A stretch of 52,415 bases of DNA. Origin: Girardia tigrina (Eukaryota). The notes under the pieces were generated by a model. That model was given only the letters and a program-made list of their open reading frames with translations. It had not been told where the DNA came from and ran no database searches. This document shows, piece after piece, positions 7,102 to 51,847 of the stretch. The stretch is from positions 72,273 to 124,687 of the forward strand of contig MQRK01235606.1 in assembly GCA_001938485.1 (NCBI GenBank), written 5' to 3'. The number at the start of each line of letters is the position of its first letter. The stretch's first letter is position 1. The position numbers were made by a program, and so were the translations under genes.

Positions 7102-7373
7102 TTATTGGTGGCCCCCATCAGTCCCTTGTTGTGATTCTGTGTCTTGAATATTAAACATGTCAATGTATAATTCTGGAAAAGACAATTCGGGATGCAAATT
7201 CTTTAATTCCTGGATAATCTTCAAATGCTCCGAATTCATTTCTGTCAACAATTTCGGGAGCTCTTCGAATATGATTTCGTATCTCTTTTCACTTTTTCTG
7301 GGTAGAACTGTTAAAATGTTTTCGTGTTCTTTTTTGATAACACTTTTTGAGGATGAATTTTCCGTTTCTTCAT
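7102..7373 (-). CDS. 2DBD-NR exon 11 (LBD helices 10-12, stop)
   Basis: Acceptor CCCAG; ...[36 protein letters not shown]...GGHQ*. Confidence 0.85.
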
Positions 7374-10110
7374 CTGGGTAATGTATTTAAATTAGTACAA
7401 AACTATGAGCCATTAAAATCCTTTACTTTCCAGGTAATTCCAAAGCAAGTACTTTGCTTGGTAAAGAACTCTTTTCCCATCATCCGGACATGAAAGTAAA
7501 TGATAATCTAAAAATAAAGTTTTTCTTTTTACTTGTTATTCTAAATTAGTACTTTACAAATTGATTTATTAATTGTTTGAAATTTGATCATTCAAAAGGT
7601 TTTTTAACACGTTGACAGACACGCATCTATTGCAGTATAAATGAACTTCGCTTTGGCGACTGTAGACGCAACTGTCTGTCAACGTGTTAATAAAAATAGA
7701 AGGCTTAAAAGTTATGACGATCACAATAAAGTTTTAATGATGAAGATCAAAGATCAAATGTTTGGTATTCCATAAAATCAAATTTACAGGGTTACTCAGC
7801 GTTATAAATTCTTTTTTCAAGGTAATAAATTCTTTATTCAAGGTTATAAATATTTAAGGTTATATTTAATTTTTTTACTTATGTTTTTACTTGATTAGAA
7901 AATGTAAGTTCACATGAAACAATTTCAAGAGGAATAACAGTGAGCATGATTATGTGGTTGGCCAAAAAGTCATTGCGTTTTTTACTAAAATATTTATTAT
8001 CAAAAAATGACATGGATGCACAAATATTTTTACACAATATACTGCCCATTATTTTAAATCACTTTCTTCCACCTTTCCGGTAGCTTCATTATTCCTGATT
8101 CATAAAAACCTTTGCCTTTGTCAGCAAAAAAGCCGTCTAGGAACGATTTGATGTCATCATCACTGGCGAATGTTTTTCTGTTTAAGGAATTCTGCAGTGA
8201 TCTAAATAAGTTAAAATCCGATGGGGCCAAGTCTGGAGAATATAGTGGGTGCGGCAAAACCTCCCAACCCAGTGATAAGAGTTTCTGGCGAGTGGTCAAA
8301 CTTGTATGCGGTCTTGCGTTATCATGCTGAATTACAACTCCTTTTCAATTTGCCAATTCAGGACGTTCCTGTTGAATTCAATGAGCCAATTTCTCCAGCT
8401 GACCACAATATCTGTCAGAATTGATGGTTTCATTCCTCGGAAGGAGTTCAAAAAACACAATTCCTTTAAAATCCCACCAGACGGAAAGCATAACCTTCTT
8501 TTGGTGAATTTCTGCTTTTGGGATCGTTTTAGCAGGCTCACCACGTTTTATCCATGATCGTCGGCGTTCCTTATTGTTGTAAACAATCCATTTTTCGTCA
8601 CCCGTAATCAAGCGCTTCAAAAATGGATCACTTTGTTCTCGCTTCAAAAGGGAATCGCAATTGTCTATACGTTTCACCAAATGAATTTCTTTCAGTTCAT
8701 GTGGTAACCACATTCTACAAGAATGATATTCAGAATCTAAACTTATGATCACAATTTTTCGCTGACAGTAGCACATCACAATCCTATCCTCAATTTTGTT
8801 GGGGACTTAACTATAATCATTGACCGAGATTGAGAATGGTCATCCTCAAAAGACCACGCTGACCTTCAGATATATATATGAGAGACATTAAAAAAGTGGT
8901 TGGTTGATATGAAAGTACTGTATGACGCAGTAAAACTAATAAAGAATGTGAGAGAAGAAAACGAAAAACAGTTTACTAGACATTAGGAATTTTTAGTTTT
9001 GTTGTATATTATTTCGAGTTGTGTCGAACTATATTTTTTGTGTCAAGTATTTATTTATTTATTGTATCCTATTTATCTGTTAAATATAAATATAATACGC
9101 AACGCAAAATAATTTTTTAAAAGAAGAGAAAGAAAGTCAGAACAGAAAATTGCCCCCCATCTTTGTTTATTCCATTATAATTATTTAAAATTTGAAAATA
9201 ATATAAAAATCAATGGAATATTAATGATTCCATAAAAAAATTCAAATTTATATGTGTTGTAGGATTTGACAAATACTGCGAGGTTAAATGTAAAATAGAC
9301 CAGTTATGTAAATGTAGACTGAACACCCTGGAGTATCAGTGAGTCCGTGTGTATGGTACATGTGTGGTTGTGTATAAAGTAATATGATCTTTATGTAATG
9401 TTTATGTGATATGTTTATTGAAATGTGGTGTACCAGTGAAAAGTTATTTTGAAAACCAAACAAATCATAAATAATTTTTTTAATAAAATAATTTTGTGTA
9501 ATATTTATAAACATATATATAAAAGGGTAAAGATACCCTAAAAAATAAAAGCAAACAGAAAAAAAACAAACAAATTACAGAAACTATAAGAAATAAAATA
9601 AACGTAAAGTAATATAATCAAGCAAAATAGTTAATTCGATACGGAAATAATTATTTAGCCTCAATTGTTGATTAGAAGGTTCATGCACAATATTTTTTGA
9701 GAAAGTTGTACATGGATTTACCAAATATAATTCGTACAATAATTGTTGTTTATTTCAACCCAAATAAACTTTATTTCATCAATTATTGAGCTGGGTTCGA
9801 GCTACAAACACTTAATGCAGCATTCGAATTATTTCAATTCAATTCAGATCAAATCAGTGTAATTTCATTGAATAATATTAGTGAACAAAATAACTCAATT
9901 ATTTACACCCTGTAAAAACATACAAATCAGCAACAGATTGTTTTCACACATGATATTCAGAAACTGTATCGAGTAAAGCATACATATATTATATATTAAT
10001 ATATATATTTACGGGATTAGGCAGATTCATATAAATCATATTTATCGACAGCATTTTCATGGAAAGCATATTCATCGAAAAACGAAATCATGGAATGAAA
10101 AATTCTAAAC

Positions 10111-10146
<36 letters not shown>

Positions 10147-11540: not shown

Positions 11541-11584
<44 letters not shown>

Positions 11585-11634
11585 NNNNNNNNNNNNNNNN
11601 NNNNNNNNNNNNNNNNNNNNNNNNNNNNNNNNNN

Positions 11635-11686
<52 letters not shown>

Positions 11687-14600
11687 TTTTAGAAAAAACT
11701 AATTTAGTGAAAGCAGTTGAAGTTTCCTTAAGCTATGCCACTGTTTTTGTTCATACATTAAAAGTACTCATTTTGTCTTTAGAATTATCGGTTAAACGAA
11801 CGGTTAAACATTTAATTCTTTAAACGGATTGCGCTTAAACGTTTACCATTTTTACTAAACGTGTGACCCTTATTTCTGAATGACAAAAAGATCATTTAAT
11901 TAAGTTTTGGCAAGCATGAGGTAGTGACGGATAAGAACCTCTGCGTTACACCTCCATAGAAATTTCAAGAAACTAAATGCATTTGTCTTTTTTCAAGATT
12001 CGTTTTTACGTAATTTGAAAAATTCTCTGAATTATAAATTTTTTTAGAGAAATCGTGTTAGAACAAAATTATGCGACTAATAAAGATTATTAATTCCTTT
12101 TCATAGACTATTATTTTAAAATATGGTAAAAGGTCTCTGAAGAACAGACATTTGAAAATAGATAAACTTTTGAAAATTTGAAACTCGAAAGGCCAAAGAA
12201 ATTCGATAATTATACTTGAAAAGCAGTTTAAAAAGATCATCAACGCTAAGTACAATATTATAGGCAATGTTTTATATTATAATACGGATTGTCACGTTTT
12301 TACATAAAGAAGTAGGATCAGGCGAATTTACCAGTCGAACATACATTTGGGTATAGTCCATGAGAAACTAGATTGAATGAAACTCCATCTCTAGGTTTGG
12401 ATGCTAGAATGCTTCTCTTACTGAAAAGCCACTCAGTTAGAGTATATTAAGAGGATTTGCAACCCAATAACTAAATGATTTCCTAGTCCTTTGTACACGG
12501 TACTGCAGCTATTTGAGAACAAAATGATGTCAATGGAGGAAAATGAATAGACTAAAGAAAAAGAACATTTATTCCATATAAAATTTTTATTTAGATGAAT
12601 ACATATATAAAGGACGACATCATTTAATGAATCCTAACAACTTTTAAACACTGTCGAAACTGACTGCTGACAGTAATTAGATGGGTCTTGGGAATATTCG
12701 CTAATGCATCCACTACAACAGCTCTGAGAGCTGAAGTAGTGTTGTAGAGTTGATTATTGAAGTTCCTATCAACTACGCATCACACATAAAAATGCAGCTG
12801 ATTGACATATGGTGAGTTGGGGGCCAAACGTTAGGTGTGTTGTGGTCGTGAAAATCCTTAGCCAACCATTCTTGGATTGTTCTGTCTATATGAGATGGTG
12901 CTCAATCTTATTGAAAAACATACTTCCTCCGACGTACCACAATAGCAATCCAAGGCTTGACAACTGTGGCTAACAACAGTGTAAGCAACGGTATCGACTA
13001 TAGTACCTAAAGTAAAATACCGGTGCCCATGATTTTAAGTCATATTTCTTAAAAATCATTTTACAAATAAATCTGAATTAATTTTAGTCTTTAAAATCTT
13101 TATTATGTTTTATATCAATATCAACATAATAATTACCACATAAAATAATAAGAATTTACTTTTCATAAGTTCCACAACACATATGAGGCTAATAGGATAG
13201 CTGGATAGGCCAAGGATAAACAGTTTCCGACTGATTGTTAATATGTGATCAGTTAATCTATGAAATGAATCAAAGTTCCTCAGGATCAACTCCCTATCGG
13301 AAACTGAAAAGTCAAAGTAGTTGTATTCGTCCAGATTATATTTGTAGTCTTGAGCAAGTTTTAACAACATGATCGGATACATGGCTTCTTGAACTAGAAT
13401 CCGCCGGGATTTCAGTTCAAATTTGTTGAAACCTGAATTTAGGAACTTTAATAAATTTTATTAATATATATAAATGCTTTTATTGATATAAATGTTGATA
13501 AAGTTTAAATTTCTTTTACACTTAGATAACGCTTGGATATTGGATATCCAGTTGTGAGTAGATTATCTGCCATATGGATTCTCCAGCCGTGTTCTTTATA
13601 TGAAATATACATAAATATTTTAGCTTTTGAGAATAAGAATAGCAAAAATATTATGGTTTTTGCTAGCTTTCACGACAACGACTTGTAAATTCAAATTAAA
13701 GAGTTTTAATCCCATACCTTGGAAAAATCATTTTTAAACAACCTTAATCTTTAAGACCGCAGTTGAGTAAGTCAGATCTCGTCCGATCTCCGAAGTTAAG
13801 CAACCAACGGCCGCGTTAGTACTTATTTGGGTGACCAATAGGGAAATCGCGGGGCCATTGACTACAGGTCAGGTCAGGCAATCTGTCTGCTACAGGTATC
13901 ATGTAAACCTGGAATACCTGTCCCATGGTCGAATAGTTGGCGACTAAACCAGCTGCCTCACCCAGAGCAACCTGGGTGAAGAGGTGTGTGAACAGCTAGC
14001 TGGATGAAAAACATAACCTAGCAAAGGGCGGATGAGCTCCTTGAAGCCAACGGCCATCCATACCTGGAGAGAAGATAGGCGCCACCAGGTTCCTTGCCTA
14101 CTCAGACACTCAAATATATATGCAAATCCAAGCATAATTGAATGCACCCACGGCCCAAAGGCTACGGTACAAAAAAAATCTTTAAGAGCACGATCATCCA
14201 ATTTGTTTTTAAATATTTCGGTTACCTCAAGTATGGAAAGTATGATGACACTAGCAACGTTTGTTCCCCTGAAAATTATGACAGCATCGCTCAATTTTGA
14301 TATAATTTTACCCAGAATCTGGTATGATTCACATTTCATAAATATTTGCTAATTCTTTTCGTTTCAGAAAAATACATTATGTATTACTTTATCGTAAGTC
14401 AATATTTAACTGTAACCTCCGTGGTCACTAAAACATATTTTCAAATTTTTTAAAGACCAATAATTCTCAACCTTTATCTTAAGACATAATTCAAAACCCT
14501 TTTTAATTGTAAACCTAGAAATTACAACTTTTTTATTTTTAAACAATCAAATTATCTTTTTTACTCAACATACTTTTTTGATCAAAAACTCATTTGATCA

Positions 14601-17600: not shown

Positions 17601-20600
17601 TGAAAAGCGTGACCCACAAACAAACAAACAAACAAACAAACACACTTTTTAGACAAATATTATATATATATATATATATAGCTAAATATATTTTTAGACT
17701 GTTTTATATATTCGTAAGATTAAATTGTGTTTTTAAAGTATTTAATTTATTTGAAAAATTGTCTAATTTGACTGGGAATGGTATAAAGTGATATATTTTA
17801 AATTAAAAACAGATTCAATAATCACAAAGATTTAAAATTATTAGATATTGAGGCGAATATTTTTCAAACAATATTTTAGGGATAAAAATTTTCAACTCTG
17901 ACATGAAAAAGGTGTGGTAAACTGTACAGGTTATAACTTCAAAGGTATGCAGAACCATGGTTATACAACCCATGGGTGGTCGTTTCTCACAGGGAATTCG
18001 AAAAGATCTCGGAGACCGAAACTATCCGACCCCGTAGGAGGCCTATCGGGGGCCTACTAGTGATTCTTTAGTCTGGGTGGACCTTCTAAAGAGCCTAGAG
18101 GCTGAATACCATTCGATGGGAGGCCCACAGGTTATATATTATCATATGTATTAAACCGACTTCTGAAACACAAACTACTCAAAATAATGTCGGTATAAGG
18201 ATAATTTTTTTGTGTTTTTTATTTCACATAAGTGAGCGATAGTCGATCTATGTAACTTCAGCAATATAATTACTTCCTCATACAGCTCATCACATTTAAG
18301 AAAGAGAGGAACAAGAACAAATCTTTGCAAAAGTTATTTAACGTTAATGGCTTCGTATGTTGTCTTGAAATAATATGAGTGTTTGTAAAAAAATAAAGTA
18401 ATAATTCCTAAATTTTACCTTTGATTGATATCTTCTCACCAATTAAAGTAGCAATATTAAAAGAATATTCTCATTAAATGGGAAATGTCTCAATAAAAAA
18501 GATAAGTACAAAAATATAACCCTTACCAGGAATGGCCTTGACGAACTGAACCGTAATTGCAGAATGGACATCGAAATAATTCATCATATAATTCCATAAA
18601 TCATTCAATAAGAACGTATTTTCGGAAAATCGTCGATTTCTGATATCTTGAAGATTCTAAATAGAAATTATTTATTAAAAATTTATTAAATAAATCAAAC
18701 TGATTTCGATATCTCAATGATTCTTGTGGCATCCTTGATAGAATGTTCAAAGGAAATTCGTTCTTCTTGTGAATAAAAACATTCATTTTGTGATAATTTA
18801 GACATTTCTTGTTTTAATCGTTCGAAAATATTTTCGGTATTTTTGACAGATTTTTGTTGGGGTTGAGGACACAATTTTCGATAAGCTCGGACGTAAACCG
18901 ATTTTTGTGGACCACAATCATTAAGAAGTTTATCGTTCTGGTCTTCAGGTTCTTGGGTTCTTTGCATTATTTCCAGAACACAATGAAACTTAACAGCGTT
19001 TGGTTGTCTACCTATTCGACTTCCTATAAGTGAATAATAATAATAATAACAATAACAATAATAATATTAATAATAATTGTGAGGATTTTGAGAAACTCTT
19101 AAATTTTTGGATTAAACAAAACATTAATATTAAAAAATTAATATTAAAATATAAAAATAAAAAAATAGAGATTTATTGTAAAATAAGTAACGACGATAAA
19201 ATGTGGTATTAAGTTACAATATTAATAATATTTAAAAAAGAAATGTTTTAGATAACATTTAAATTATTGAAATTCGTAAATTAAATAAATTTAAAAAACG
19301 AATATAAGTTAAAGTAATAAAATTATTAAATTAAATAGATTTGAAAACTAATTAAATACATATAAGATTTTAAGAATAGTTAAACAGAATTTATGAAACT
19401 TTCAAAAAGTAAATACAATTGGAAGAAAACTAAATATTATTATTAACAACATCAATATGATTTTTCAAACATTTATTAACATCACAATCAGAATTGTTAT
19501 GACAACAATTATTCAAAAGACTTTCGCTATTTGATATTTTCTCGATTAATATTTTTCAATCATCCATCTGTGTAGGAGAGACACAATCCGAATCAACATT
19601 CAACATACACAATATCAACACACAATTCCAAACATTCCTCACAATCACAACAAATATTATAAAAATAACTAAGTTTAAGAAAATTTTTCTTCAAAATATA
19701 ATACAATATTTAAAAAATATTCATAATTAAATACAAAATTTAATATATAAAATATTTGAAAATAGTTTATATTTATAATTAAAATAGTTTTAAAATTAAC
19801 AAAGGTTTATAAAAGTTAATACAATTCAAATTTCGAAAAAAATAAATTTACACATTTTATATTTACAATTATTTTGATATTATTGGTTTGTGCAAGAAAA
19901 ATTAAATATTGTTCCTCAGAAATTTACATAGACAAAACTTGTTTAAATAATATATATATTGTTGTTATTAAAAAAAGTTTCAAAAAATGTCTTTATATGA
20001 ATTCTCATCAGAATGTATTCCCGAAACTAATAGTAACAATAATAATATTAATAATTATTATTATTCATTTAAATTTTATATATAAATCATGGTGAAATAT
20101 CTATTTTGAAAGGTAATTAAAAGTTATTTACTCTTAAATTCCATTATTTCTATCAATTTTGTTTTAATAAATTGATTTTATTTATATTTTTATTTGTGTC
20201 CTTAAATGAGGACAATGAATTTATTCATGTTTTTCGTGATTTAATTAAATTATTTTTTAATAAATTAAACTAGAAAAGTAAAAATAAATTAAAACTTCAA
20301 TTCACAACATTCAGAGTCAATGTTAAGGTCGATTTAATCTAGAAAAATAACAAAAAACTCTGAATAATTTTTGTTGAACTTTAGATAAACTTTTAAATTT
20401 GTGAAAGAAAAAAATATTTGATAAAAAATGTATATTTGATAGGAACTTTTAAAATATTATATAATTTATTTAATTATTAACAATTTCTTTCGAAATTCGA
20501 TCTAATATTTAAATAATGAAAAGTTATAAAGAAAAAGCAAAGAAATAAAATAAATACTATAAAAATATCTTTAATTTATCATAATATTAGCAATTAACAC

Positions 20601-28663: not shown

Positions 28664-28714
<51 letters not shown>

Positions 28715-36329: not shown

Positions 36330-36379
<50 letters not shown>

Positions 36380-39300
36380 TATATGTTTGTAAGATCAATT
36401 TTTTTTAATTTTTTAAATATTTGATTATAAATCATAGAAAAAGTTATTAAATATTAAAAGCAAATTTTGAGCTATTGAGTCTTAAGTGTTCTAAAATAAT
36501 AAAAAATCCTTCAGCCCTTTTTACATATTACGACAAGATATTGTAAAATCTTACAATTTATCCATCTCATTCCCAATAATCCCCACAAAATGACACAACA
36601 TGTCAAACAAAAGGTTCTCTAAAACTTTCTTAATCTTATCCATTATTCTTTTGTCATTATATATTATTTATCCTGTTCACTGTCTCTTTTACTCCATCAT
36701 AAATCTCCTGATTCGATTTCAATAAAAATTCAAGGGAAAGTGGATAGAATTAACAATTAGAAGATCCGGTGGACATAAAGACCGGTAATTGGATAATTGC
36801 GAAAGTTGATGAGCTGAAATGCTATTAAGCGAAATGTTGTTTTTAGTGAATTTTGTAACAATTTCACGCCCTACTTGTCAGCCACGTCAATTTACGAAAA
36901 CCGTGGATAATTTATATTGAAACGGTACAAATAAAGTTGACGAGCAATCAGTAGAAAACGCGCAGTCAGGAGAATAGTCTCGATTCATCGACATTTGATA
37001 TATGATTTGGTCATTTGTGATGATTTTTGACAACTACGAAAGGGGAACTGACAGACAAAAAGGTACATAAATATACCGACAGGGATCTATTTGTACAACC
37101 AACGTAAACAAAGCCTTTATTTGAGTTGAAAATAAATTAGTAATGATACATGTGCAATTAAATTTCGTTTACCTTTTTTTGACATTCCTACTTCGAGACA
37201 TCGGTTGAATCTGCAACTTTTGCAAAGGTTGCGGCTGCTGCTGCCAGTCAAGGAGCAGTCGTTGTAGCCGGTGATGCACGTCAGCGGCTGGTTGATGCTT
37301 TCCGTCCGTCTGAAAAACCCCTGAAACATTTTTTAAACCTTTAAAAACAAATAAACGAAAACGATTTTTTTTTCGTTTTTAAAATGAATAAATGAATAAT
37401 GTAATCATTTCAAATAATATTATTAATTTAGTTCGAAAATTCAGCGGTCATTACCCGAATATAACAAGTAACGAAAACAAATGTTTTATTAAAATAATTT
37501 TTTGGGACCCAAATTGGTACACGTTTTTTAACACTTGATATTTGATATAATCGTTATTCTTTTACTTAAAAGGTGCCTAAATAAATATTTATCTTCGAAA
37601 AATTGTTTTTTTTTCATTTAAAAGCATTCAATATTTGACCAAAGATAACTAAAATTTTTGAAACTTATATTAGGTTGATGCAAAAGAAATGTCGTTTTTA
37701 ATGTATTAAATATTCATTGTTAGAAATATTTAGAAAATCATTAATTAATAGATTCATATTTAAATCTACTTTAATGCTAGAAACTTTACTCTATATTTTG
37801 ATACCAGGTATAGCATTATTGTTGTTAATTTAAGGTGTATTTATTTTATTTTAGAAATGTTAGAAAAGAAGGAAATGAGAACAATTTATTCTGCGATTTC
37901 AAACTCGGTCGAAAAGTGACAGAAACGGCTCGGAATATTAACAATGTATATGGACAACGTACCACTAATTTACGATCAGTACAACGTTTTCTAAGTTTCG
38001 TAGTAGCAACGAGAGCTTTGAAGATGAAAAACACGGTAGTCGACCATCACAAGTTGACGACGACCATTTAAAGAAGTTAATTAATGCTGACCAGCATAAA
38101 AATTCACGAGAAGTCGCTCAAGAACTCAACGTTCACCAATCAACAGTTGTTCATCACCTGAAGAAAATTCGGAAAGTGAAAAAGCTGGACAAGTGGGTGC
38201 CGCACGAACTAAACGAAAATAAAAAAAATCGTCGTTTTAACATGTGTTCTTCTCTGCTTTTGCGTAATCAAAGCGACCCGTTTCTGGATCGAATTGTAAC
38301 GTGCGATGAAAAATGGATCCTATACGACAACCGGCGACGTACGGTTCAGTGGTTGGATTACAATGAGGCTCCAAAGCCTTTTCCTGAAGTCAAAATTACA
38401 CCAAAAAAAGTCATGGTAACTGTTTGGGGGTCTGCACACGGTTTAATCCATTACAGCTTCCTAAAACAAGACGAAACAATTATAGCGGAATAGTATCGTC
38501 AGGAAATTGACAAAATGTACCAAGAACTACAAAAAACGGCCGGCATTATTCAATAGAAAGGGGCCAATTCTTCTGCATGACAACACTCGTCTACGTGTTG
38601 CAAGAAAGACCGTGCTGAAGTTAAACGAACTGGGATATGAAACTTTACCTCATCCATCGTACTCACGAGACCTTTCTCCTACAGACTATCACCTTTTCAA
38701 ACATTTCAACCAGTTTCTTCACGAAAATGCTTCAGAAACCAAGGAGATGCTGAAAAAGCCTAGGATGACTTCATCGCCTTCAGAACTCCAGAATTTTATG
38801 AAACTGGATTAAAAAAAACTTGTTATCCGTTGGTAACAGTGTGTTCAATGAAATGGTTTTTATTTTGACTTATAAAGTTAATTCTAAAGAAAGTTATGTT
38901 CATTTAAAGTTGACGGTTAAAAATCGACATTTCTTTTGCATCAACTTAATAAAAGTTAGTGCTTTTGAAAAGGTTGAAGGTTGTTTAGAAGGGTAATTTG
39001 AATTTAATATATAATTCGAAATGATAGTAATCTTAAACCTCTCAAAGAATCAAATATGAAGCCAGCCATATAAGTTTTAGTTGTTTCATCCTGATTGACT
39101 AAAGGAGCCATTATATAAGATAAGCAAGGTCCTTAAAAAGGTGTATGAGAGAGGGGATCTACATTTTATAGTGGATTTAACAAAAAAAATGACCAATTGT
39201 AACTAGTGGAAAGACGTGAATGTGGTATTTAAATATTAAATGCAGAAAACAAGGGTCATAAAAAACGTAATCATAAATTTATTTTCTTTAACAAACAAGT

Positions 39301-42300
39301 TTTAAAGGTGTATCAGCATTATTTTGGTTTTATTAAATTAGTTTTTGTCATTTTACACAGTGCAGAATTCAGAAACTGTATTTGGAAAGTGTTACTTGGA
39401 AAGGTCAATTGGCGAGACTAGTTCTGTTGCTGGTGAAGAAAATCCATTTAGGCTAAAGTCAAACAATAGTTTAACCATTTTAAGATGATAGAACATCTGT
39501 TTTTGATGAAGAAAAATCAGAATGGAAAAGTAAAATTGACTGCGATATATGGAAAAAACTCGAGCAATTTGGGTAGAGTGAACAACAAAAAAGCACCGGA
39601 GAACTAACAATACACTTAAATGCTTGACAAATGTACTCCGCAGTCATTATTTACTCCAACTGGTAGTTTTAAACTGTGTTCCTACAATTTTCTGCGACTG
39701 TAATTGCATAGATGTAAGATTGACGATTGATTTACTGTGAGGAGAACTTGAATCTCTGTTCACGGGTAGTAGACCGTGTCCAGAAGAATATTATAACTGG
39801 GGATGAAATAACTTTTGATTTTCATGAACCCGAATTGAGACATGGGTCTCAAAATTAAAAGCTGACTTTGGAAAAAGATGCGGGCGTTTGTATATCAAAA
39901 AAGTTGTCATGCTAACCAATTTTTAGATACCAAAAAAGTAATCCTCCTCGAGTTTGCTGAGACAAGTGCTAGTATCTACAACGAGGAATAATTTATTCTC
40001 GTACAACAGACTAAAATAATAATAATGAAGAACAGAACAAACTTTTGTAACTTGTACTATTTGAATGATAATGCATCCATTCATAGTATTGTTTCTTTAC
40101 CAATCCTAAAGGTTTTTGCAAAAAAAGGCATCAGAAAAACATTTAGATCTTTATTATATGTTGGAAAATGTGATGACTTGCTTGCTATGGAAAATAAATT
40201 ATGTTTTCTATTGTAGGTTCCCTACTTATTTGATGCACGATATACGGCGAGTTAGTCATAGTTAGAAAAACATTTTCTGTTTCTCAATCAAAAAGAGGTA
40301 ATTTTGCTGCGAGAGAAAGCTAAATATTCTTCTACAAAAATGGCTCAAGAACAAATTAGACAGTTTTTATGGCGACTCCAACAGCATTTTTCATACTCTC
40401 CGGATATTAAGCCTAAATATTAATTTTGTTTATTGTTGATATTGATAACGAAGATTTTGTAAATTCTTTCCAAAGAATTATATTTAATTAATTAGCAGAT
40501 ATCTTTTTTAATAGTTTCGAAATCTAAATATTATTTGAGATGAGGAATGTTTTGAAAAAACTTTATAAAACACTTACTTTACATCCTTCACAAGTTAAAG
40601 CTCCAAAATGGAAACCAGATGACTTTCCTCCACAAACTCTGCATGGAATCCTTGAGATATCAAATTTAGAATTATTGTTGTTTGGGTCTAAAAAATAGTG
40701 AAATGATTGACGAAATTATGAAATATTTATTTTATTTTTATATATTTAAATAATGATAACAATTTTGAAAATTGATAAACAACTTTGTTAAATAATTATT
40801 GATAAGCTTCAATCTGGATGACTTTCTTTTGTTAAAAACAAAATTCATTCATTAAAAAAATATATATTTAGAGACAATATATTTGGAAGGATCAACCGTC
40901 ATCTCAAGGTCACTGATTAATAATATAATTCACCCGTGTAAAATGCAAAAATAATGATTATGTAATCGATTGCGCAAACATTATTTTTGAATTATAATTT
41001 TATAATAACAAAAGAAATAAAATAATTCGCTCTATAATAATTTTCTAAAAATGGAAAATAAATAATGAAATGTTATTACATTTACGATATGTTTCGTTCA
41101 AAATCGAACGTCTTCAGAGGCTTGGTCCATTGGGAGAACTCAAAGTTTCAACAAAAAGTATAAGCGGTTAGTCTGTATTAAATTACAGAAATTATCAAAA
41201 TAATCCTTGACAATATATGTACACATAAAATCATTTTTGAAATTCATATTATAATTTATTCCTTATTTAACAACATATATGTGAAAAATAAAAGTAATTT
41301 AAAATTGGTAGGTTTCAGAAAAATGTATTTAAGATATTGAAACTTGTACATGAATTGAACAGCAATCCATTTTTAAGATACAAAACTTTAAATACAATAA
41401 CTTTCACATTGTTTTTTAGTCCAATTTTTATTTTGGGACCCCAGTTACGAGGATTGACAAGATGGGAGACATAAAATGTTAAATAAATTAAGCTAAATAA
41501 GTCAGCACTAAATAAATTAAGTTAAAATTTAAGTTAAATTAAAATTTAACGATGAATCAGTGGACAAGACAATCGTCACACTATTTTTATTGATATTATT
41601 TTTTTGAATTACATTTACGGCCAAAACATCAATTTACTGTACCACAAGTGATCCCTAGGGGTAGAGCCGTAGTAAGGAAAAATTGCGCCCTGTACGAAGT
41701 TCAAATCTGGCGCCCCCAGCGCGAAAAAGATTCACTACTACAAATTATGCCTTAAAAGAATTAAATTGACTTTGGACGTTCGTATTCCCATGCTCTATGA
41801 CGCAGCATTGATGCTTAAGCCTTACATCGCCTAGCTATAAGAAAATATCAATTTATTCGGATAAATTCATGGATGCTTTGCCATTAAACAAAAAAGACTA
41901 CTATAATTATTATTATAAAGTAATTAGCCTACAGAGATCTGATCAGTCAAAATTGGTCATTTTGCGATTTTGGCGCCTGGTGCGGCCGCACCGCTCGCAC
42001 CGCCCTCACTACGGTTCTGCCTAGGGGTACTTTAAGGTGCCACTTGTAAGATTTAATAATTAATGATTAATAATAAAAAAATTCTCAAAATTTGTGCAAA
42101 AAATAAATTAATTAATGCATACAATTTTACTTTTAATCATTCAAATTTATCGTAAAATTTGTATTAATATGTGAAGTTTAAATACTGACATAAAATTGTT
42201 ATACGATTCTCATAATATTATTTATATATTTTATTATCATTCAGATCATGAATGAAACAATCAATCCGTTTATTTTGACCTGAAATAAATCCATTATTAA

Positions 42301-45300
42301 AATTTTAAAACCAATTTTCAATAAAAAAATAACGAAAAAATCTGATGAAAATTGCAACAAAATTATTATTTTAGTCAATTTGAAATGCAGTAAATCTATC
42401 ATATTCGATACATTGAAGTTTTTATCAAAACAACTTATAGGTTCCATTAAGACTTTTACACAATATAACTGTTTAAAACTAAACTACAATTTGAATTAAA
42501 ATAAATTAAATTAAATTAAATTAAATTACTGACGTTGAAGAGCCATCCCAATAGTGATACACTTTTTGAACCGGCACGACTGGCACTTGATCCGGCCGGT
42601 CTTCAGCTGGGCGCACTGCCCATCCGTCGGACAGGGGATCGTGAATTTCGTGCAGTTTAAATTGTGCCTCATGAAAAATTTCTAAATCATAAATACTATT
42701 TTTAATGAAATTAATTTATATTTTAAATAAATTTCTTTCTAAATTTAATGTTCCATTTTGTAATAATTATAACAATTAGCGGAGATTATTACACCGGAAA
42801 TAACTATATTTGTGTGACTACCGTTTAGGCTGTTTACGAGTGTCATCGAATTAGGACCTGTGAACTTTACTGATGGACGGCATAAACAAAGTTTACGGTA
42901 GGTAGAAAGTTTAAGATATGAGGACTTTTGGAATGTGATCAGTGCGATTGTTTCTATATCGAAATTCAATAAAAAAAAGATTAATTTATTTGAGGTGGAA
43001 AAAATCTAGTTGAATTTTTAACGATAGAAAGTTATATTTTATATTATTTGTTAAGAGTCTTCCTTTGAGGATATTAATCTATAACAATTGTCCTTGTAAA
43101 GGACCCTGTGTTAGGGTTCCTGTGTTCGTGGTCTTATATTTTATATATTTCAATTTATATACGGAAATAGTAAAAAGAGATTGACCAGTAGATCCCATCT
43201 GAAACCCAAAGGATTTAGAAATATGGAAATAAAAAAAACATACAATAATAATAAAGAGAATGAGAAGATTAAAATTAAAAAATATTTATTTTATTTAAAT
43301 ATGATGTTTCAAAGCGATTATTATATAAAAAATGTGAATTATCAAGACTAGGTACTTTTCTATGATTTATTTTTCAACTAGATATTCAATTATTCCATTA
43401 TCATAAAAAAGACAGGTCCATAGCTTTTCAGCTATTTCATGGATATTGTCTTTTTTGCTAATGGAGATCTCAAATGTATTTATTATTTTGATTACTGCTT
43501 GGCCTCACGGACATAAAAAGAGCTTCACACTTCTCCTGTTGTAACAAATCATTGGAAAAGATCAGTTTTTTATCAGTGAAAACAGTCTGGACTCTTGATA
43601 AAAATTTTCATTGTCTGAAGGGGTCAATATACTCAGCATTGGCGTACAGGGTAGTGAATCATAGACTCTATCGTATAGAAACCATTTGACAAATGCAAAG
43701 TTTTCTAATCCTCTCACACGGCTTCAGATGCAAGAGTGCGAGCTCTCAATGCACGGGCACACTTCGGCTTCCCTCTGAGAAATGACCAGTCATGTTCCTT
43801 CGTTCCATGATTCTGGAGACTTCTGGCTGTATAAACGCACTTAGTGCAACGGGGAAATGGGCAATGAAACATTCCCTTATCCGTTATATTATCCAGCGGA
43901 AAATTCAGCACCACACTAGGGATTACTCTTGGACAGTCATCATCAGTTACACCAACAGACACTGGCATATCATGTTCCGCATTTAAGTTCAAAGGTCCAG
44001 TACGTCTTTCTGTTTCATCTCTTTGTACTACTTGGATGTTCGTAGTACCATTACCTTGGGTTCGATGATCAGTTAATAAATGCCGTTGTAGCCATCCACT
44101 AATTTTATAAGTTTTGTGGCAGTTCTCCATGGTACATATGAATGAACCACCACTTCTCTGTATCGTCGGCACCGTGGCCAGATGCACATTCTTAATGTGT
44201 CTTGTGAGTTCCTTCTGCTCAGCAAATTCTTTAAAGCAAGAAGGGGATGTGGAAGCTAATATTTTGATGCGCAGCTGAAGCATTTTCGGATATTCTTTCT
44301 CGAGTTCGATTACCTCTTTCAGTCGCTCAGATATGGTTCCTTTGATCAGGTGTTTAAATTCCTCATCATTGTCGAGAAGCCCTCTTTCGTTTAGGCTTTC
44401 CCTGTCTTCTGCCAAATCTGCCGGATCGTTGAATATCCAGGGCACATCGTGAGCAATGCGCTCTCTCATCAGTTACTTTTACGGCCGCTGATTCTGTGAT
44501 TTTCTGAGGCAATCTCAGAGTTTAGAACTCTTCGAACCTCAGTTACACCCTTCCGTGAATTTTATTCATAGAATACTACGCCTCTTTTGGCTAGAATTAC
44601 TATTGCCCAAGTCAGTCCAATCGTCATGTCCTTATTCAGGATCCTGTCGAGTTTGATCTTCTTGAGAGCTGTCCTCATGCAGCAGTTATGGAAGGCTTGT
44701 AACCGTGTAACGTCCTTCTAACTCGTTGCCCAGCACTTACTATCATAATAGACCACAGGGAAAATACTAGTCTCAATCAGTTTTCTCTTCAATACTATTG
44801 GGACGCGGTTACTCTGAATTGCAGGTTGCAATTCTTTAAGCTTCCGCATTCCATTTCGTATTCGTTGACTAATATCCCGATTGTAGTTACCACTAGTGGT
44901 CAATGTACTTCCGATATAACAAAATTCTTTCACCCATTCTATGACTTTCTCACCACATTTGACTTGCGATATTACAAAGCCTGATTCGTCAGTAAGGCAC
45001 ATGACTTTTGTCTTAGTAGCACTTATTGTCAGTCCAAACTACATAAATGTGCTTCTTAGTATATGTAGGTTTTTACAGGCTCGATCAATATCAGAGTCGA
45101 TGATACTGAGGTCATCTGCATATGCAAATATGTTCACTTGATATTCAGTGCCTTGATCATCGATCAGGGCGACACCTCCACCAAATCCTTTCAGTATAGC
45201 CGTTTTGATCATTTAATCGAAGATCAAGTTGAAAAAACTAGGTCCCATCACACATCCCTGCCTAACACCTATTTCCATGGGAAAATTACTGTTTCCTACA

Positions 45301-46614: not shown

Positions 46615-46645
<31 letters not shown>

Positions 46646-49600: not shown

Positions 49601-51847
49601 TGAAAAAGTTTACCTTTGTAAACTTTTATTTATTTTATATTTATTTTATTTTATATTTTTATTTTATAGTTTTTATTATTCGTTTCGAATTTTAATTGAT
49701 TATTCAATTTTCAATTCACATGATCCACATAATGCATTCTTATGTTTTATATTCTTAATAAATGTTATTAATGTTTGTTAAACCGTTTTCTTTTATGTTG
49801 CTTTTTCTTTTTTGGCGGGTGTGTTGTCTTGTTTTGTGTGGGGTCTAGACTAAATTATTACAAGATTTATTAACACAACAATACAACCTATATCAACAAT
49901 TAAATACAACGAAGTGGATTCTTGGTGCGGAAGAAGAATCCACCTACCCTCAAACCAAGATACGACGGACCGTATCAGGTCATAAGCCGATCAGATAATA
50001 TGAAGACCCTACTCCTCAATATCAACGGTATACAGAAGAGAATCTCGATAGATCGGGTCAAACCGACTTTCTCTCCAAAAGAAGAAACATACTCCCCAGG
50101 GAGTTATGTAAAGTAACTAGTTTACTTTCACGATTGTGCAAGAGTTGGTTGATGATATCAGATCAACCCGAACAATTTCAATTTCGAAATTGAAATGTAT
50201 TTTTGTAATTTTTATTTTTAATAGTTTAGAGTTTTAATAATTTCGTATTTTGTATTAGCTGAATTTTAGAATTTTTTTTTGGTAAATCTGTCAAAAATTG
50301 AAAAACAATATTAAATGGAATTAAAAAAACTGATTAAGGTTTTATAAAAAGATTGTTGAATTTGTTTAGCTGAATAATTTATGTTATGATAAACGGCGAA
50401 AAGATTATTGGAATTGTATTGGTGGTTTTAATCGATATTAATAAAAGTTATTTCCGTGCGTTTGTTGATGTTTTTTGAAAGGAATTAATCGATAAGATCT
50501 TTATCTTACAAAAAATTCGAAGCAATTGTTAATAACCGATTTTATTAACATCTCTCATAATGCAAATGAGAGCTTCAAAAATCGAATCGGCACAAATAAC
50601 TTCGAGTGATGAAAGTGAATTCGAACCTTCGATTCCGAAAAAAAGAATTAGAGTAATTTCTGACAGTGATGAAGGATAATAAAACATCTTTGGTTTTATT
50701 TTTTGTTCTTCTGTTTAATGTATTGTAATTAAATAAAAAACAGTGTTTCCGTAATATATTACATATTTTAACCTGTCAATGCATTTTATTTTTATTTCTG
50801 TGTACACCTAAAAAATATTGAAAAAAAATCACAACTGTTAAATAGCAAAATTATGCATTTTCTGTTTCGATTTACACGGTTTTGACTTGAAAATTTTGAA
50901 TTTTCGATTTAAACGTTTTCTCAGGAACGTATCTACCGTGTAAATCGGGTTTAAATATAACTTTCATCATTATCTGAAGTATTCACTGCGTTGTACGTCA
51001 TTTACGGCGTCGATTATATATTCTTTTTCATAATATTCTATGAATATTTTTGAGCAAAATGCAAATAAATCGTTAAAATTAATCTTAAAAACCTCAAAAT
51101 AATCAAAATATTTTGTAATTTAAAAATCCAAAATTATATATTTCACCTTGCACGCCTCACAAACATAAGCTCCGTGATGAAACCCGGCCGCCGACTCTTT
51201 ACAAACTTGACAAAGTTGATTTTCCATTTTTTGTTGGTAATCATAAAATGCAGATTCTGGACTCGTGAATGTCAAATGTTGTTCCGGTACTTCCGGAATT
51301 TCATCTTTACATTCAACAATGGAAGAAATATCAGAGTAATCTACAGATTCTTTTAGAGAAAGCGCCATACTCTCTGCCTTCATAGATGGCAGTTGATGAA
51401 GTCTTAATGGGATATTATTATTATTATCATTATTATTATTATTATTTATTACTTAGTTTGAGTTAAAACCAAATCAGAACTTTCAGAATTAGCACCGTCT
51501 ATATTTTTTTCAATAAACGATTTATTTTCCGCCTCAGATTTCGATTTTCCTTCGTAATTCCAGTCGGTATTCCAGTTTTCCGATTGGTACATGTAGCCAT
51601 ATTCGTCGATGGTCATATTTACAGAATAGTCTTTCAAAATCCATGGATAAGAAATATCCTCAAACTTCCTGTGGTCATGGTCGAATGGTGGAAACACCCA
51701 CGTTGATGAGTGGGATTTCAGGTCATTGAATCTGTGATGGTTGTCCCAGTTGAAGTGGTTCTGAACGCACCCTAAAATCGGTATTTTTTTCAGTCTTATC
51801 AAAACAGATATCAACTAACCGGTACACGTTTGACTGTTATATTCCAT
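7102..51847 (-). CDS. Nuclear hormone receptor with two tandem DNA-binding domains (2DBD-NR family), 695 aa, 11 exons
   Basis: Minus-strand join: 51847-51820, 51771-51453, 51402-51147, 42681-42534, 40687-40578, 37320-37173, 19023-18701, 18656-18527, 13432-13160, 7507-7427, 7373-7102 = 2088 nt. All ten introns are GT-AG and phase-compatible, with no internal stop. DBD1 [33 protein letters not shown]; DBD2 [33 protein letters not shown]; T-box GSRIGRQPN; LBD FVKAIPGF; AF-2-like FPELYIDMF. An in-frame stop lies upstream of the ATG. Confidence 0.92.
7427..7507 (-). CDS. 2DBD-NR exon 10 (LBD)
   Basis: TTTTAG|..[26 protein letters not shown]|GTAAAG; phase 1-1; a 53-nt intron follows. Confidence 0.78.
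7608..7686. mobile_element. 79-bp piggyBac-type MITE with TTAA target-site duplication
   Basis: TTAA-CACGTTGACAGACA...TGTCTGTCAACGTG-TTAA: perfect 14-bp TIR flanked by TTAA on both sides. Confidence 0.75.
7953..8715 (-). mobile_element. mariner (D,D34D) transposon, 5'-truncated, frameshifted
   Basis: [46 protein letters not shown]; 3' TIR GGTTGGCCAAAAAGTCATTGCG next to TA at 7951. Confidence 0.9.
10183..11411 (-). ncRNA. Minimal type I hammerhead ribozyme split into two halves (11411-11396 and 10208-10183) by a Tc1 insertion
   Basis: Rejoined minus strand: ATTG-CTGATGA-TGATATATATAAACATC-GAAACATGTC-CAAT. This gives an intact CUGAUGA/GAAA core, 4-bp stem I, palindromic stem III ACATGT and a GUC cleavage triplet. 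Confidence 0.75.
10209..11393 (+). mobile_element. Tc1-family (D,D34E) transposon, middle hidden by an N gap
   Basis: Perfect 29-bp TIRs CAGTGCGGTTCATAAGTAAGTTCGCACCC with TA TSD; FQQDLAPAH...[16 protein letters not shown]...GYPTKY*. Confidence 0.93.
12620..13030 (-). mobile_element. Highly decayed maT-like transposase fragment
   Basis: Minus strand reads [33 protein letters not shown]...[20 protein letters not shown]. Confidence 0.6.
13160..13432 (-). CDS. 2DBD-NR exon 9 (LBD helices 3-8)
   Basis: TTCAG|[30 protein letters not shown]...ICVVELMK|GTAAAT; completes FVKAIPGF from exon 8. Confidence 0.88.
13755..13863 (+). pseudogene. 5S rRNA-derived sequence (5'-truncated), head of a probable SINE3-type element
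   Basis: GATCTCGTCCGATCTCCGAAGTTAAGCAACC..GGCCGCGTTAGTACTT..TGGGTGACC..GGGAA matches the 5S loop C, A-box, loop E and C-box. Helices CCGCG/CGCGG and CTTATTTGG-GTGA-CCAATAGG pair. The 5' strand of helix I and the oligo-T terminator are missing. Confidence 0.85.
13755..14112 (+). mobile_element. 5S-headed SINE-like retroposon with GC-rich structured body
   Basis: The 5S head runs straight into ~250 nt of GC-rich sequence with hairpins (ACAGGTAT..ATACCTGT; GTCG..CGAC; ACCCAG..CTGGGT; CCAGCT..AGCTGG). Confidence 0.55.
14658..14960 (+). mobile_element. Decayed fragment of the RTE-LINE C2H2 zinc-finger tail (same family as 43714-45860)
   Basis: [60 protein letters not shown] aligns with ORF 43714-44469. 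Confidence 0.8.
15970..16333 (-). pseudogene. VAMP/synaptobrevin (R-SNARE) homolog with a frameshift between the SNARE motif and the TM anchor
   Basis: Frame A (16333-16067): [50 protein letters not shown].. is an R-SNARE motif with the zero-layer R. Frame B (to the stop at 15970): [28 protein letters not shown] is a C-terminal TM segment. Confidence 0.75.
16470..17040 (-). mobile_element. mariner (cecropia/Hsmar1-like) 5' half
   Basis: TIR TTAGGTTGATACAAAAGGAAAG next to TA; [19 protein letters not shown]...[20 protein letters not shown]...[11 protein letters not shown]. Confidence 0.88.
17125..17680 (-). mobile_element. Possible non-autonomous Helitron-like element with (GTTT)n microsatellite
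   Basis: Minus strand starts TATATAATATTTG..GTGTGTTTGTTTG(n)..GGTCACGC and carries internal GC-rich hairpins; a canonical CTRR end was not confirmed. Confidence 0.35.
18527..18656 (-). CDS. 2DBD-NR exon 8 (LBD helix 3)
   Basis: [44 protein letters not shown]|GTAAGG; preceded by a 44-nt intron. Confidence 0.88.
18701..19023 (-). CDS. 2DBD-NR exon 7 (T-box/hinge)
   Basis: TTATAG|[28 protein letters not shown]...IIEISKS|GTTTGA; continues GMSKK from exon 6. Confidence 0.88.
22321..22510. repeat. ~43-bp imperfect inverted repeat enclosing a (TA)n array and an N gap
   Basis: TTTCAGAAAAATAGTGTGGGTTGGGAATTAATTCGAGTTTAGAG ... CTCTAAAACTCGAATTAATCCCCAGCCCACACTATTTTTCTGAAA. Confidence 0.8.
22790..23760 (-). 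mobile_element. Penelope-like retroelement, 3' part (RT C-terminus, GIY-YIG endonuclease, pLTR)
   Basis: [19 protein letters not shown], then [28 protein letters not shown]...[15 protein letters not shown] (GIY-YIG); a hammerhead lies ~70 nt after the stop. Confidence 0.9.
22843..22884 (-). ncRNA. Minimal type I hammerhead ribozyme of the Penelope pLTR
   Basis: TCAGC-CTGAAGA-T-GGTGGA-AAA-TCCACC-GAAATATATT-GCGA: intact core, 6-bp stem II, palindromic stem III ATATAT, AUU triplet, weak bulged stem I. Confidence 0.8.
23996..24173. repeat. Three 26-bp imperfect direct repeats separated by unique 45- and 55-nt spacers
   Basis: ATTGTTTGTATCGCCAGGGCTTCAGT (23996), AGTATTTGTGTCGCCAGGACCTCCAT (24067), AGTATTTGTGTCACCGGGACTTCAGT (24148). 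Confidence 0.75.
25650..26290 (-). pseudogene. Probable decayed class A (rhodopsin-like) GPCR fragment, TM1-TM4
   Basis: One frame reads [37 protein letters not shown] (TM1 GN motif and ICL1 LRxPT), ERWDL..EPVCTL and [17 protein letters not shown] (TM3-like). Further on, [16 protein letters not shown] is TM4-like. Several stops. Confidence 0.45.
26720..28650 (+). mobile_element. Decayed Penelope-like element (GIY-YIG region and pLTR), interrupted by an IS630/Tc1-like element
   Basis: [12 protein letters not shown], then [35 protein letters not shown], similar to 22951-23289. It shares the GATTACATAATCATCA 3' motif. A mutated hammerhead CTGCAGA-T-GGCGG-TTGAT-CCGTC-GTAA sits at 28618-28644. 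Confidence 0.7.
27370..28593 (+). mobile_element. Decayed IS630/Tc1-like (DDE_3) DNA transposon
   Basis: TIRs CATTTT(T)ACAATGAAATTGAACTTTTG at both ends; [33 protein letters not shown] and [10 protein letters not shown] fragments. Confidence 0.78.
29560..30615 (-). mobile_element. Highly decayed mariner-like element
   Basis: Inverted AATACCCGGAAT (29563) / ATTCCGGGTATT (30600); minus strand reads TVDE.. and [10 protein letters not shown]. Confidence 0.5.
31212..31511. mobile_element. 300-bp hAT (Charlie/Buster-like) MITE
   Basis: Perfect 15-bp TIR CAGTGTCGGGCAACC / GGTTGCCCGACACTG; no 8-bp TSD recognisable. Confidence 0.7.
32510..33683 (+). mobile_element. Decayed full-length mariner
   Basis: Degenerate TIRs (TTAGATTGCCAAGTATGAGATTTGT / ACAAATTTCATCTTTGACGACTTAA); [23 protein letters not shown] and [11 protein letters not shown] pieces. 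Confidence 0.8.
35225..36177 (-). mobile_element. Internally deleted Tc1-family element
   Basis: ~45-bp TIRs CAGTAGGCGACACATTATTATAACCACCTGATATTTTCATG with TA flanks; [21 protein letters not shown] and FMHDSAPCH. Confidence 0.85.
37173..37320 (-). CDS. 2DBD-NR exon 6 (DBD2 second zinc finger)
   Basis: TTTCAG|[49 protein letters not shown]|GTAAAC. Confidence 0.93.
37670..38949 (+). mobile_element. Full-length mariner (D,D34D; cecropia/Hsmar1-like) with frameshifted transposase
   Basis: TIRs TTAGGTTGATGCAAAAGAAATGTCG / CGACATTTCTTTTGCATCAACTTAA with TA TSD, 1280 bp; [23 protein letters not shown] and [13 protein letters not shown]. Confidence 0.93.
39780..40500 (+). mobile_element. Highly decayed mariner fragments
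   Basis: [16 protein letters not shown] and [17 protein letters not shown]; further on [19 protein letters not shown]. Confidence 0.5.
40578..40687 (-). CDS. 2DBD-NR exon 5 (linker and DBD2 first zinc finger)
   Basis: TTTTAG|[37 protein letters not shown]|GTAAGT; not in the ORF track. Confidence 0.93.
41086..41120 (-). ncRNA. Degenerate hammerhead ribozyme (Penelope pLTR remnant)
   Basis: CTGAAGA-C-GTTCG-ATTT-TGAAC-GAAACATATC. The core and stem II are intact; stem I is lost. The Penelope 3' motif TGATTATGTAATC lies at ~40955. Confidence 0.55.
41662..42019. mobile_element. hAT-type MITE with 8-bp TSD
   Basis: TSD CCTAGGGG at 41654-41661 and 42020-42027; TIR TAGAGCCGTAGTAAGG / CCTCACTACGGTTCTG; GC-rich GGCGCC subterminal motifs. 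Confidence 0.82.
42534..42681 (-). CDS. 2DBD-NR exon 4 (DBD1 second zinc finger)
   Basis: ATTTAG|[49 protein letters not shown]|GTCAGT; not in the ORF track. Confidence 0.93.
43714..45860 (-). mobile_element. RTE-clade non-LTR retrotransposon (5'-truncated, frameshifted RT) with a C-terminal C2H2 zinc-finger tail
   Basis: [66 protein letters not shown] and FCYIGS; then three C-X4-C-X12-H-X4-H-type fingers in ORF 43714-44469 (the first lacks its first Cys). Confidence 0.9.
47253..47947 (-). mobile_element. pogo-like internally deleted DNA transposon with an intact 111-aa ORF (47731-47396)
   Basis: TIR AACGGATATCGCCAA(A/T)TAGTATCAC at both ends with TA flanks and many subterminal GTGATACTA motifs. 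[36 protein letters not shown] is Brinker-type HTH-like and is joined to an acidic tail. Confidence 0.7.
49301..50956. mobile_element. Tigger/pogo-like non-autonomous element
   Basis: Inverted CCCGATTTACGCGGTA (49310) / TACCGTGTAAATCGGG (50934) with repeated TTTACACG subterminal motifs and GGAACGTATC. Confidence 0.55.
49900..50112 (+). mobile_element. Gypsy LTR-retrotransposon integrase C-terminal (GPY/F) fragment
   Basis: [39 protein letters not shown], followed by a PPT-like GGGGAGTTA-TGT. Confidence 0.75.
51147..51402 (-). CDS. 2DBD-NR exon 3 (A/B region and DBD1 first zinc finger)
   Basis: ..[27 protein letters not shown]|GTGAAA. Confidence 0.92.
51453..51771 (-). CDS. 2DBD-NR exon 2 (N-terminal A/B domain)
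   Basis: TTTTAG|[13 protein letters not shown]...[10 protein letters not shown]|GTAATA; open frame, phase-compatible with both neighbours. Confidence 0.72.
51820..51847 (-). CDS. 2DBD-NR putative exon 1 (start)
   Basis: [12 protein letters not shown]|GTTAGT, followed by a 48-nt intron; an in-frame TAA lies 8 codons upstream. Confidence 0.6.

Follow-up and report, generated by a model that had tools for sequence, protein, structure and literature searches.

An intact two-DBD nuclear receptor gene in the planarian Girardia tigrina, very probably a 2DBD-NRA2/A3 orthologue

Zinc-finger pieces of the nuclear receptor type lie along about 44.7 kb of AT-rich eukaryotic DNA (about 29% GC) from the planarian Girardia tigrina, and they raise the question of whether one gene encodes a receptor with two different DNA-binding domains (DBDs), which family it belongs to, and how its product would read DNA. 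The interest of this family lies in the presence of two different P-boxes in one receptor, for which neither response element nor ligand is known. In planarians, the A1 paralogue nhr-1 is reported to be necessary for the development of the reproductive system. A first-pass annotation made from the sequence alone had read the locus as a complete gene for a two-DBD (2DBD) receptor, and we followed it up computationally.

Materials and Methods

The window is the whole stretch of DNA analysed, 52,415 nucleotides of contig MQRK01235606.1, and positions are counted from its first letter. A joined protein of 668 aa was assembled from window coordinates and used for the frame check, for local BLAST against fetched proteins, and for the tree. 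Relatives were sought with HMMER in an exhaustive search that took exon 4 (51 aa) as the query, and the labels A1, A2, and A3 were given by matching cluster-member accessions to the nomenclature table of Wu & LoVerde 2023. For the ligand-binding domain (LBD), a profile (profile A1) was built from fourteen orthologue LBDs and the three window exons and searched against solved structures. Loci with CEACK were searched in the whole assembly (1.43 Gb, 255,254 contigs). For RNA evidence, a search gave runs with small shares of the stretch 37100-42700, and the contigs of four of these runs were aligned to that stretch.

Results

A six-frame motif scan detected two C-X2-C-X13-C-X2-C fingers and two second fingers, all on the minus strand, at positions 51212-51150 (finger I), 42633-42574 (finger II), 40643-40581 (finger I), and 37278-37213 (finger II). 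All four pieces matched Pfam zf-C4 above the curated cut-off, in the order I-II-I-II; since together they span the zf-C4 profile twice, they make up two complete DBDs, and an intron interrupts both at the same position. The P-boxes are CEACK/K (across 51147/42681) and CEGCK/G (across 40578/37320), with a phase-0 intron right after CK in each. The linker, counted from GM to the first Cys of DBD2, has 18 residues and is made across the phase-1 junction 42534/40687. The tandem DBDs with P-boxes CEACKK and CEGCKG and an 18-aa linker, as first proposed, are thus borne out by the zf-C4 matches and the splice model. We also observed that finger II of DBD2 (37213-37278) has the spacing C-X6-C-X10-C-X2-C, so that the loop following the D-box is longer by one residue; C-X6-C-X9 has been reported for tapeworm 2DBD-NRs and C-X5-C-X9 for typical receptors.

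Read on the minus strand from 51847 to 7102, 10 GT-AG exons gave an unbroken 668-residue frame of 2007 nt with a single terminal stop, as confirmed by a script run on the window. The domains follow in the order A/B, DBD1, 18-residue linker, DBD2, GRIP-box, hinge, and LBD. The first-pass annotation had counted 11 exons and 10 junctions, whereas 10 exons and 9 junctions are needed for the intact 668-aa frame; its end points, 7102 and 51847, coincide exactly with the stop codon and the candidate ATG of our model. A pseudogene was rejected on the intact frame, the presence of all 16 cysteines, and the spliced RNA, and a processed copy was rejected on the presence of introns.

The two DBDs are encoded by exons 3 to 6. 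Exon 3 (51147..51402) encodes the end of the A/B domain, including the NTSS, and DBD1 finger I ending in CEACK; it matched zf-C4 positions 1-25 (E 8e-6), showed 73-80% identity to A2 orthologues by tblastn, and ends at the phase-0 donor AAG/GTGAAA. Exon 4 (42534..42681) opens with the last K of the P-box, continues through DBD1 finger II (C-X5-C-X9-C-X2-C), and enters the linker (zf-C4 26-69, E 5e-9); exon 5 (40578..40687) completes the linker and encodes DBD2 finger I as far as CEGCK (zf-C4 2-25, E 1e-8). Exon 6 (37173..37320) provides the last G of the P-box, FFRR, DBD2 finger II, and GMSKK (zf-C4 24-70, E 2e-10).

Downstream, exon 7 (18701..19023) encodes the GRIP-box CTE and the hinge, with 86% identity to A2 orthologues over the GRIP-box stretch by tblastn, and the split codon G/GA at the exon 6/7 junction rebuilds the GRIP-box stretch found in homologues. 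The LBD is encoded by exons 8 to 10. Exon 8 (18527..18656; splice sites TTTAG/ and /GTAAGG) runs from the helix 3 region to FVKAIPG, the start of the Ti signature, and gave tblastn matches at 18608-18525. The LBD core (helices 4-8 region) lies in exon 9 (13160..13432), with 42-45% identity to A2 orthologues (tblastn E 1e-20). The C-terminal helices with the AF2 core PELYIDMF and the stop codon TAA (7104-7102) are in exon 10 (7102..7373; tblastn E 7e-8 to 3e-7), which includes the region of the L.FPELYIEMFQL motif conserved in A2 orthologues; the frame is kept across the phase-1 junction of exons 9 and 10.

The 5' end is predicted. Exon 1 (51820..51847, 28 nt) is a prediction from sequence, with a candidate ATG at 51847 and the donor GTTAGT; an in-frame TAA TAA lies 27 nt 5' of that ATG. 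Exon 2 (51453..51771, 319 nt), the predicted A/B domain, holds 121 open codons in 29% GC DNA and is flanked by GT-AG mini-introns of 48 nt and 50 nt. Neither exon found homology or read support, conservation of the A/B domain sought in the paralogues was not seen, and the next 10 kb of the contig (30% N) yielded no further 5' coding exons. The true 5' end could differ from exon 1, e.g., via trans-splicing or an upstream exon. At the 5' end, where exons 1 and 2 are predictions, the earlier designation of the gene as complete is unproven. Intron sizes are strongly bimodal: there are three mini-introns (51403-51452, 50 nt; 51772-51819, 48 nt; and 18657-18700, the 44 nt preceding exon 8), and the others range from 1.8 to 18 kb.

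Automatic annotation could drop both middle finger exons, and this locus illustrates how. In the open reading frame track, the only trace of exon 4 is an ORF of 48 aa, which falls short of the default of 60 aa; no ORF with a start codon covers exon 5, and exon 6 gives an ORF of 70 aa. The remark of the first-pass annotation that two finger exons are lost from such a track was therefore correct.

RNA evidence was obtained for the DBD region. One public contig of run X1 (contig 1, 1647 letters) matched 42683-42536, 40687-40577, and 37319-37172 with no mismatches and no gaps, and its pieces are contiguous; exons 4, 5, and 6 are thus joined exactly at the predicted sites. The run kind was guessed, and we treat X1 as RNA because the contig is intron-less. 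The joint 37319/40577, which removes 3257 nt bounded by GT..AG on the minus strand, was seen in both X1 and X5, and in contigs of these two runs exon 5 is spliced at the predicted sites on either side. Shorter contigs of X5 and X6, which bear other organism labels, contained the same exons, each contig with one mismatch. One spliced RNA contig therefore carries DBD1 finger II together with both fingers of DBD2, in support of the earlier reading. At the exon 6 donor, the X1 contig ceases to match the genome, although 72 more intron letters were available in the aligned stretch, and it continues for 728 letters; exons 7-9 total 726. Upstream of exon 4 it has 513 letters, as many as exon 3 and 257 nt of exon 2 would supply. 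That DBD1 finger I and the LBD are included in the same RNA as exons 4-6 is strongly suggested. Two of the nine junctions (exons 4/5 and 5/6) were thus confirmed in RNA; the others rest on sequence and homology. Judged by its length, the X1 contig is expected to end no more than about 2 nt from the exon 9/10 junction (about 13160), and such an end near the exon 9 donor could mark a branch of the assembly graph, such as intron retention or an alternative 3' exon. A search of protein collections for the species' own protein or transcript, using the DBD region of a fluke orthologue and exon 3, found none; the sole match to exon 3, P0199, is a fragment of a Schmidtea A3 paralogue.

Four N gaps interrupt the assembly within the gene. 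Intron 6 (18,149 nt) contains 36201-36329 and 22394-22443, both flanked by (TA)n on either side, and intron 9 (5,786 nt) contains 11585-11634, with (TA)n on both sides, and 10317-10916, a run of 600 N within a Tc1-like transposase frame. All four are intronic, and no reading frame spans any of them. Homologues have no missing block at exons 6/7 or 9/10; in P0008, for instance, residues 705-725 follow 656-707, and 1188 follows 1187. We infer physical continuity over the four gaps from this collinear homology.

The LBD was recognized through homologues. Pfam Hormone_recep (PF00104), which had been expected alongside zf-C4, did not match the single LBD exons, and exon 2 was likewise without a match; the expectation thus came true for zf-C4 on the four finger exons and failed for Hormone_recep on single exons. 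The closest A2 orthologues list only PF00105 in their precomputed Pfam column. In local BLAST, the joined LBD aligned to the Clonorchis A2 protein with an E value of 3e-47 and 40% identity over about 200 residues, unbroken at the junctions. Profile A1 matched the LBD structures of LXR-beta (E 5e-18), ROR-alpha, ROR-beta, ROR-gamma, Rev-erb, and EcR, with E values from 5e-18 to 1e-15 for the LXR, ROR, and Rev-erb structures. About 6 of the 10 defined positions of the Ti signature were matched, with divergence as in the A2 orthologues, and the AF2-like core LYIDMF has D where relatives have E.

The relatives place the gene in the 2DBD family. Multi-finger Cys-rich proteins that topped the first HMMER search with exon 4 were set aside in favor of two-stretch CEACKK/CEGCKG matches, and the relatives found by HMMER carry these two motifs about 85 residues apart. 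In tblastn against the window, they gave eight collinear blocks, corresponding to the four finger exons, the GRIP-box exon, and the three LBD exons. The nearest named proteins in a word-indexed search are 2DBD receptors of flukes and tapeworms. The best-scoring group is 2DBD-NRA2 (Of TGZ60667 and Ov XP_009167226), and the other groups are A3 (Em CDS37339 and Eg KAH9280969) and A1 (Eg KAH9284012 and Em CDI98537). In a tree of the region from DBD1 to the CTE, built without Schmidtea sequences, the gene fell inside the flatworm 2DBD-NRA2/A3 clade (SH-aLRT 100). It stands there at a trichotomy with A2 (84) and A3 (98) and is nearest to A2 by identity (67%, the highest), path length, and tblastn score.

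Features defined for group A of the 2DBD-NRs (NR7; PMC10497141) were found throughout the gene. It has the P-P module CEACKK-CEGCKG, and its spacer of 18 residues falls within the range of 17-22, with the linker junction confirmed by the X1 contig. The G-box RxGRQ(P/S), with a 5-residue pre-Grip and without a T-box, is formed across the predicted exon 6/7 junction, and the NTSS (S/T)PExAFxQYQxR(M/S)EGQx precedes DBD1 and departs from this consensus at three positions, all conservatively (Q to D, R to K, and G to N). Like the A2 orthologues, the gene has F five residues after the G-box, in accordance with the A2/A3 rule (not His). The reading A/B-DBD1-DBD2-hinge-LBD and the 2DBD assignment are therefore upheld by every testable feature of 2DBD-NRA, including the tree placement.

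The assembly contains at least four loci whose first finger has CEACK: the window gene, an A3-like locus (L002), an A4-like locus (L003), and an A1-like locus present on three contigs (L004-L006). This four-locus complement parallels the four planarian genes nhr-1, -2, -3, and -6. The A1-like (nhr-1-like) sequence, CDVCGDVSAGFHCSAFVCEACK, occurs identically on contigs C12721, C132206, and C151909 of assembly G000 (L004, L005, and L006), which may be haplotigs or assembly duplicates. The A1-like paralogue L006 reads NAIKH in the stretch following the G-box, His being the A1 mark. This paralogue is compact, with mini-introns of about 47 and 37 nt, and has DBD1 finger II, the linker, and DBD2 finger I in a single exon; the linker intron of the window gene (1,846 nt, phase 1) is thus absent there.

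Among planarian sequences, Schmidtea mediterranea Sme2DBD-NRA2 (nhr-2) has DBD and Ti-signature rows about 90% like the window gene, an uncertain figure, as the rows come from the S2/S3 files of PMC10497141 as machine-read text with errors. After FFRRTES the window gene reads INQPLT and the Schmidtea row TK..QHLA, and in NLN.TKF the window gene has C where the Schmidtea row has S. With the A2 members Sm2DBD-alpha (Schistosoma mansoni) and Eg2DBD-alpha (Echinococcus granulosus), the window gene shares CEACKK-CEGCKG, an NTSS of the (S/T)PExAFxQYQ type, a 5-aa pre-Grip followed by RIGRQP, a C-X6-C D-box in DBD2, and an AF2 core like L(Y/F)xEM, with about 55% identity over conserved blocks. The Eg2DBD-alpha gene has ten exons and nine introns (PMC6844482), the same exon count as the window gene. 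The window gene differs from them in one extra residue in DBD2 finger II, in D for E in the AF2 core (LYIDMF), and in a far shorter A/B domain (about 180 aa versus 350-570 aa). The single-DBD NR1 receptors ROR, Rev-erb, and LXR have in common with it the EGCKG-FFRR region (in DBD2), the RxGRZP GRIP-box CTE, and the closest LBD structures. This GRIP-box was first defined in Rev-erbA-alpha. Unlike them, the window gene has an extra N-terminal EACKK DBD, lacks a T-box, has a diverged Ti signature, and is not detected by Hormone_recep exon by exon.

Discussion

We conclude that the locus is very probably a planarian 2DBD-NRA2/A3 orthologue, that is, an intact and transcribed 10-exon gene for a receptor with an NR1-like LBD, whose two DBDs would together read a composite element. 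On each monomer, DBD2 (EGCKG, FFRR, and RIGRQP) would bind, like ROR and Rev-erb, to an AGGTCA-type half-site with a 5' minor-groove extension, and DBD1 (EACKK; triad E-A-K) would occupy a neighboring ERR/ER-like half-site. With DBD1 and DBD2 on adjacent half-sites, one polypeptide would read a composite element. Dimerization would be mediated by the LBD, and A2 orthologues homodimerize without pairing with RXR. For the tapeworm protein, an AGG(C/G)CA half-site has been proposed for DBD1 (PMC6844482), and yeast two-hybrid and GST pull-down experiments showed that Sm2DBD-alpha homodimerizes, whereas it did not bind RXR (PMC1810520). Such class I behavior is known for Sm2DBD-alpha and Eg2DBD-alpha. 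Intramolecular reading of two half-sites is plausible and has already been discussed in the literature (PMC1810520 and PMC6844482).

Whether the 10 exons form one gene product as modelled can be questioned in two ways. The half that bears the DBDs (51847-37173) and the half with the LBD (19023-7102) might be separate transcripts or might have been mis-joined at N gaps, for intron 6 is 18,149 nt long with two such gaps and the exon 6-7 junction was not observed in reads. However, the X1 contig departs exactly at the exon 6 donor with 728 extra letters, close to the 726 nt of exons 7-9; the split codon G/GA restores the conserved GRIP-box stretch; order and collinearity are as in every orthologue; and the same (TA)n repeat flanks gaps on both sides. 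We regard two separate halves as extremely unlikely. Skipping of exons 4 and 5 is the other concern: together they measure 258 nt (86 codons), so their loss keeps the frame, and since phase-0 introns divide the two DBDs at the same point, DBD1 finger I could be spliced to DBD2 finger II. That such a single-DBD receptor is the main product and the two-DBD form minor is hardly credible, however, given that the aligned contigs, from three run labels, all carry exons 4-5-6 joined and that both DBDs are kept in orthologous cDNAs and proteins of other flatworms. Since rare isoforms are lost from contigs, a skipped form that is minor would be hidden there. Very improbable, though somewhat less so, is a regulated switch, in which skipping of exons 4-5 could turn the receptor into a hybrid with a single DBD. 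If true, the hybrid would start the helix with CEACK and continue with G-FFRR, DBD2 finger II, and the GRIP-box, and one gene would have two DNA specificities. As a separate point, the two-DBD form may read a composite element intramolecularly.

For the 10-exon, two-DBD receptor that we favor, the way in which the DBDs share the work is less settled. A three-dimensional model of Eg2DBD-alpha on DNA led to the proposal (PMC6844482) that only one DBD recognizes the response element, probably DBD2 with the GRIP-box, and that DBD1 stabilizes the complex or contacts DNA or protein non-specifically. The uneven conservation across A2 orthologues agrees with this, with 51-53% identity in DBD1 finger II versus 76-93% in DBD2 finger I. 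EACKK and all eight cysteines of DBD1 are nevertheless conserved among planarians, flukes, and tapeworms and also between phyla, which fits base-specific reading better than a passive DBD1, and we consider a single reading DBD rather unlikely. Alternatively, instead of a self-contained intramolecular dimer, the working unit may be a homodimer held together by the LBDs, with its four DBDs on four half-sites or on two separate pairs. Sm2DBD-alpha does homodimerize, joint action of four P-boxes has been proposed (PMC1810520), and 2DBD-NRs have class I (homodimer) LBD residues (PMC10497141). This arrangement is possible, and we grant it tentative weight; yet we found no response element described for any 2DBD-NR, and it is compatible with, rather than exclusive of, the reading of two adjacent half-sites by each monomer.

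The first-pass annotation had called these orphan receptors rare, which does not hold, as 2DBD-NRs are known from numerous phyla of both protostomes and deuterostomes, and Schmidtea mediterranea has four named genes (PMC10497141). The locus leaves the knowledge of the family unchanged. It adds a resolved A2-type gene structure in a second planarian, with DBD1-DBD2 junctions backed by RNA, and its value is that of a correctly annotated orthologue and a source of reagents for binding-site and RNAi experiments.

At 44.7 kb, the window gene is about four times longer than the 10.9 kb given for Sm2DBD-alpha/Eg2DBD-alpha, because its introns are filled with transposons, and its huge introns indeed contain abundant transposon remnants. 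A high-copy repeat is present at 37660-38970 in intron 5 and also at 40840-41026 and 41588-41961; the piece at 37660-38970 resembles mariner and has a plus-strand frame like that of a transposase. Contig depth summed over this repeat reached thousands in all three flatworm-like runs, and copies 90-95% alike were present even in a leaf-litter metatranscriptome (X7). Intron 3 holds a remnant of a non-LTR retrotransposon (43717-45947) on the minus strand, parallel to the gene and with 40% GC against 29%, which has a C2H2 zinc-finger frame (43717-44472) and pieces of a reverse transcriptase (RVT_1 at 45289-45555); a related C2H2 piece lies at 14765-14941 on the plus strand. Further remnants were found in introns 6, 8, and 9, at 8381-8806 (minus), 10296-11303 (plus), 16240-16873 (minus), 35562-36171 (minus), and 22954-23316 (minus). 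They include a mariner transposase that matched Pfam Transposase_1 (E 5e-28), Tc1-like frames, of which one is cut by the 600-N gap, and a frame with a GIY-YIG domain of the kind carried by Penelope-like elements. At 22330-22510, a 50-N gap forms the center of a long inverted repeat, reading GGGTTGGGAATTAATTCGAGTTTAGAG...(TA)n on one side and (TA)n...CTCTAAAACTCGAATTAATCCCCAGCCCAC on the other, which looks like a hairpin-forming or MITE-like element.
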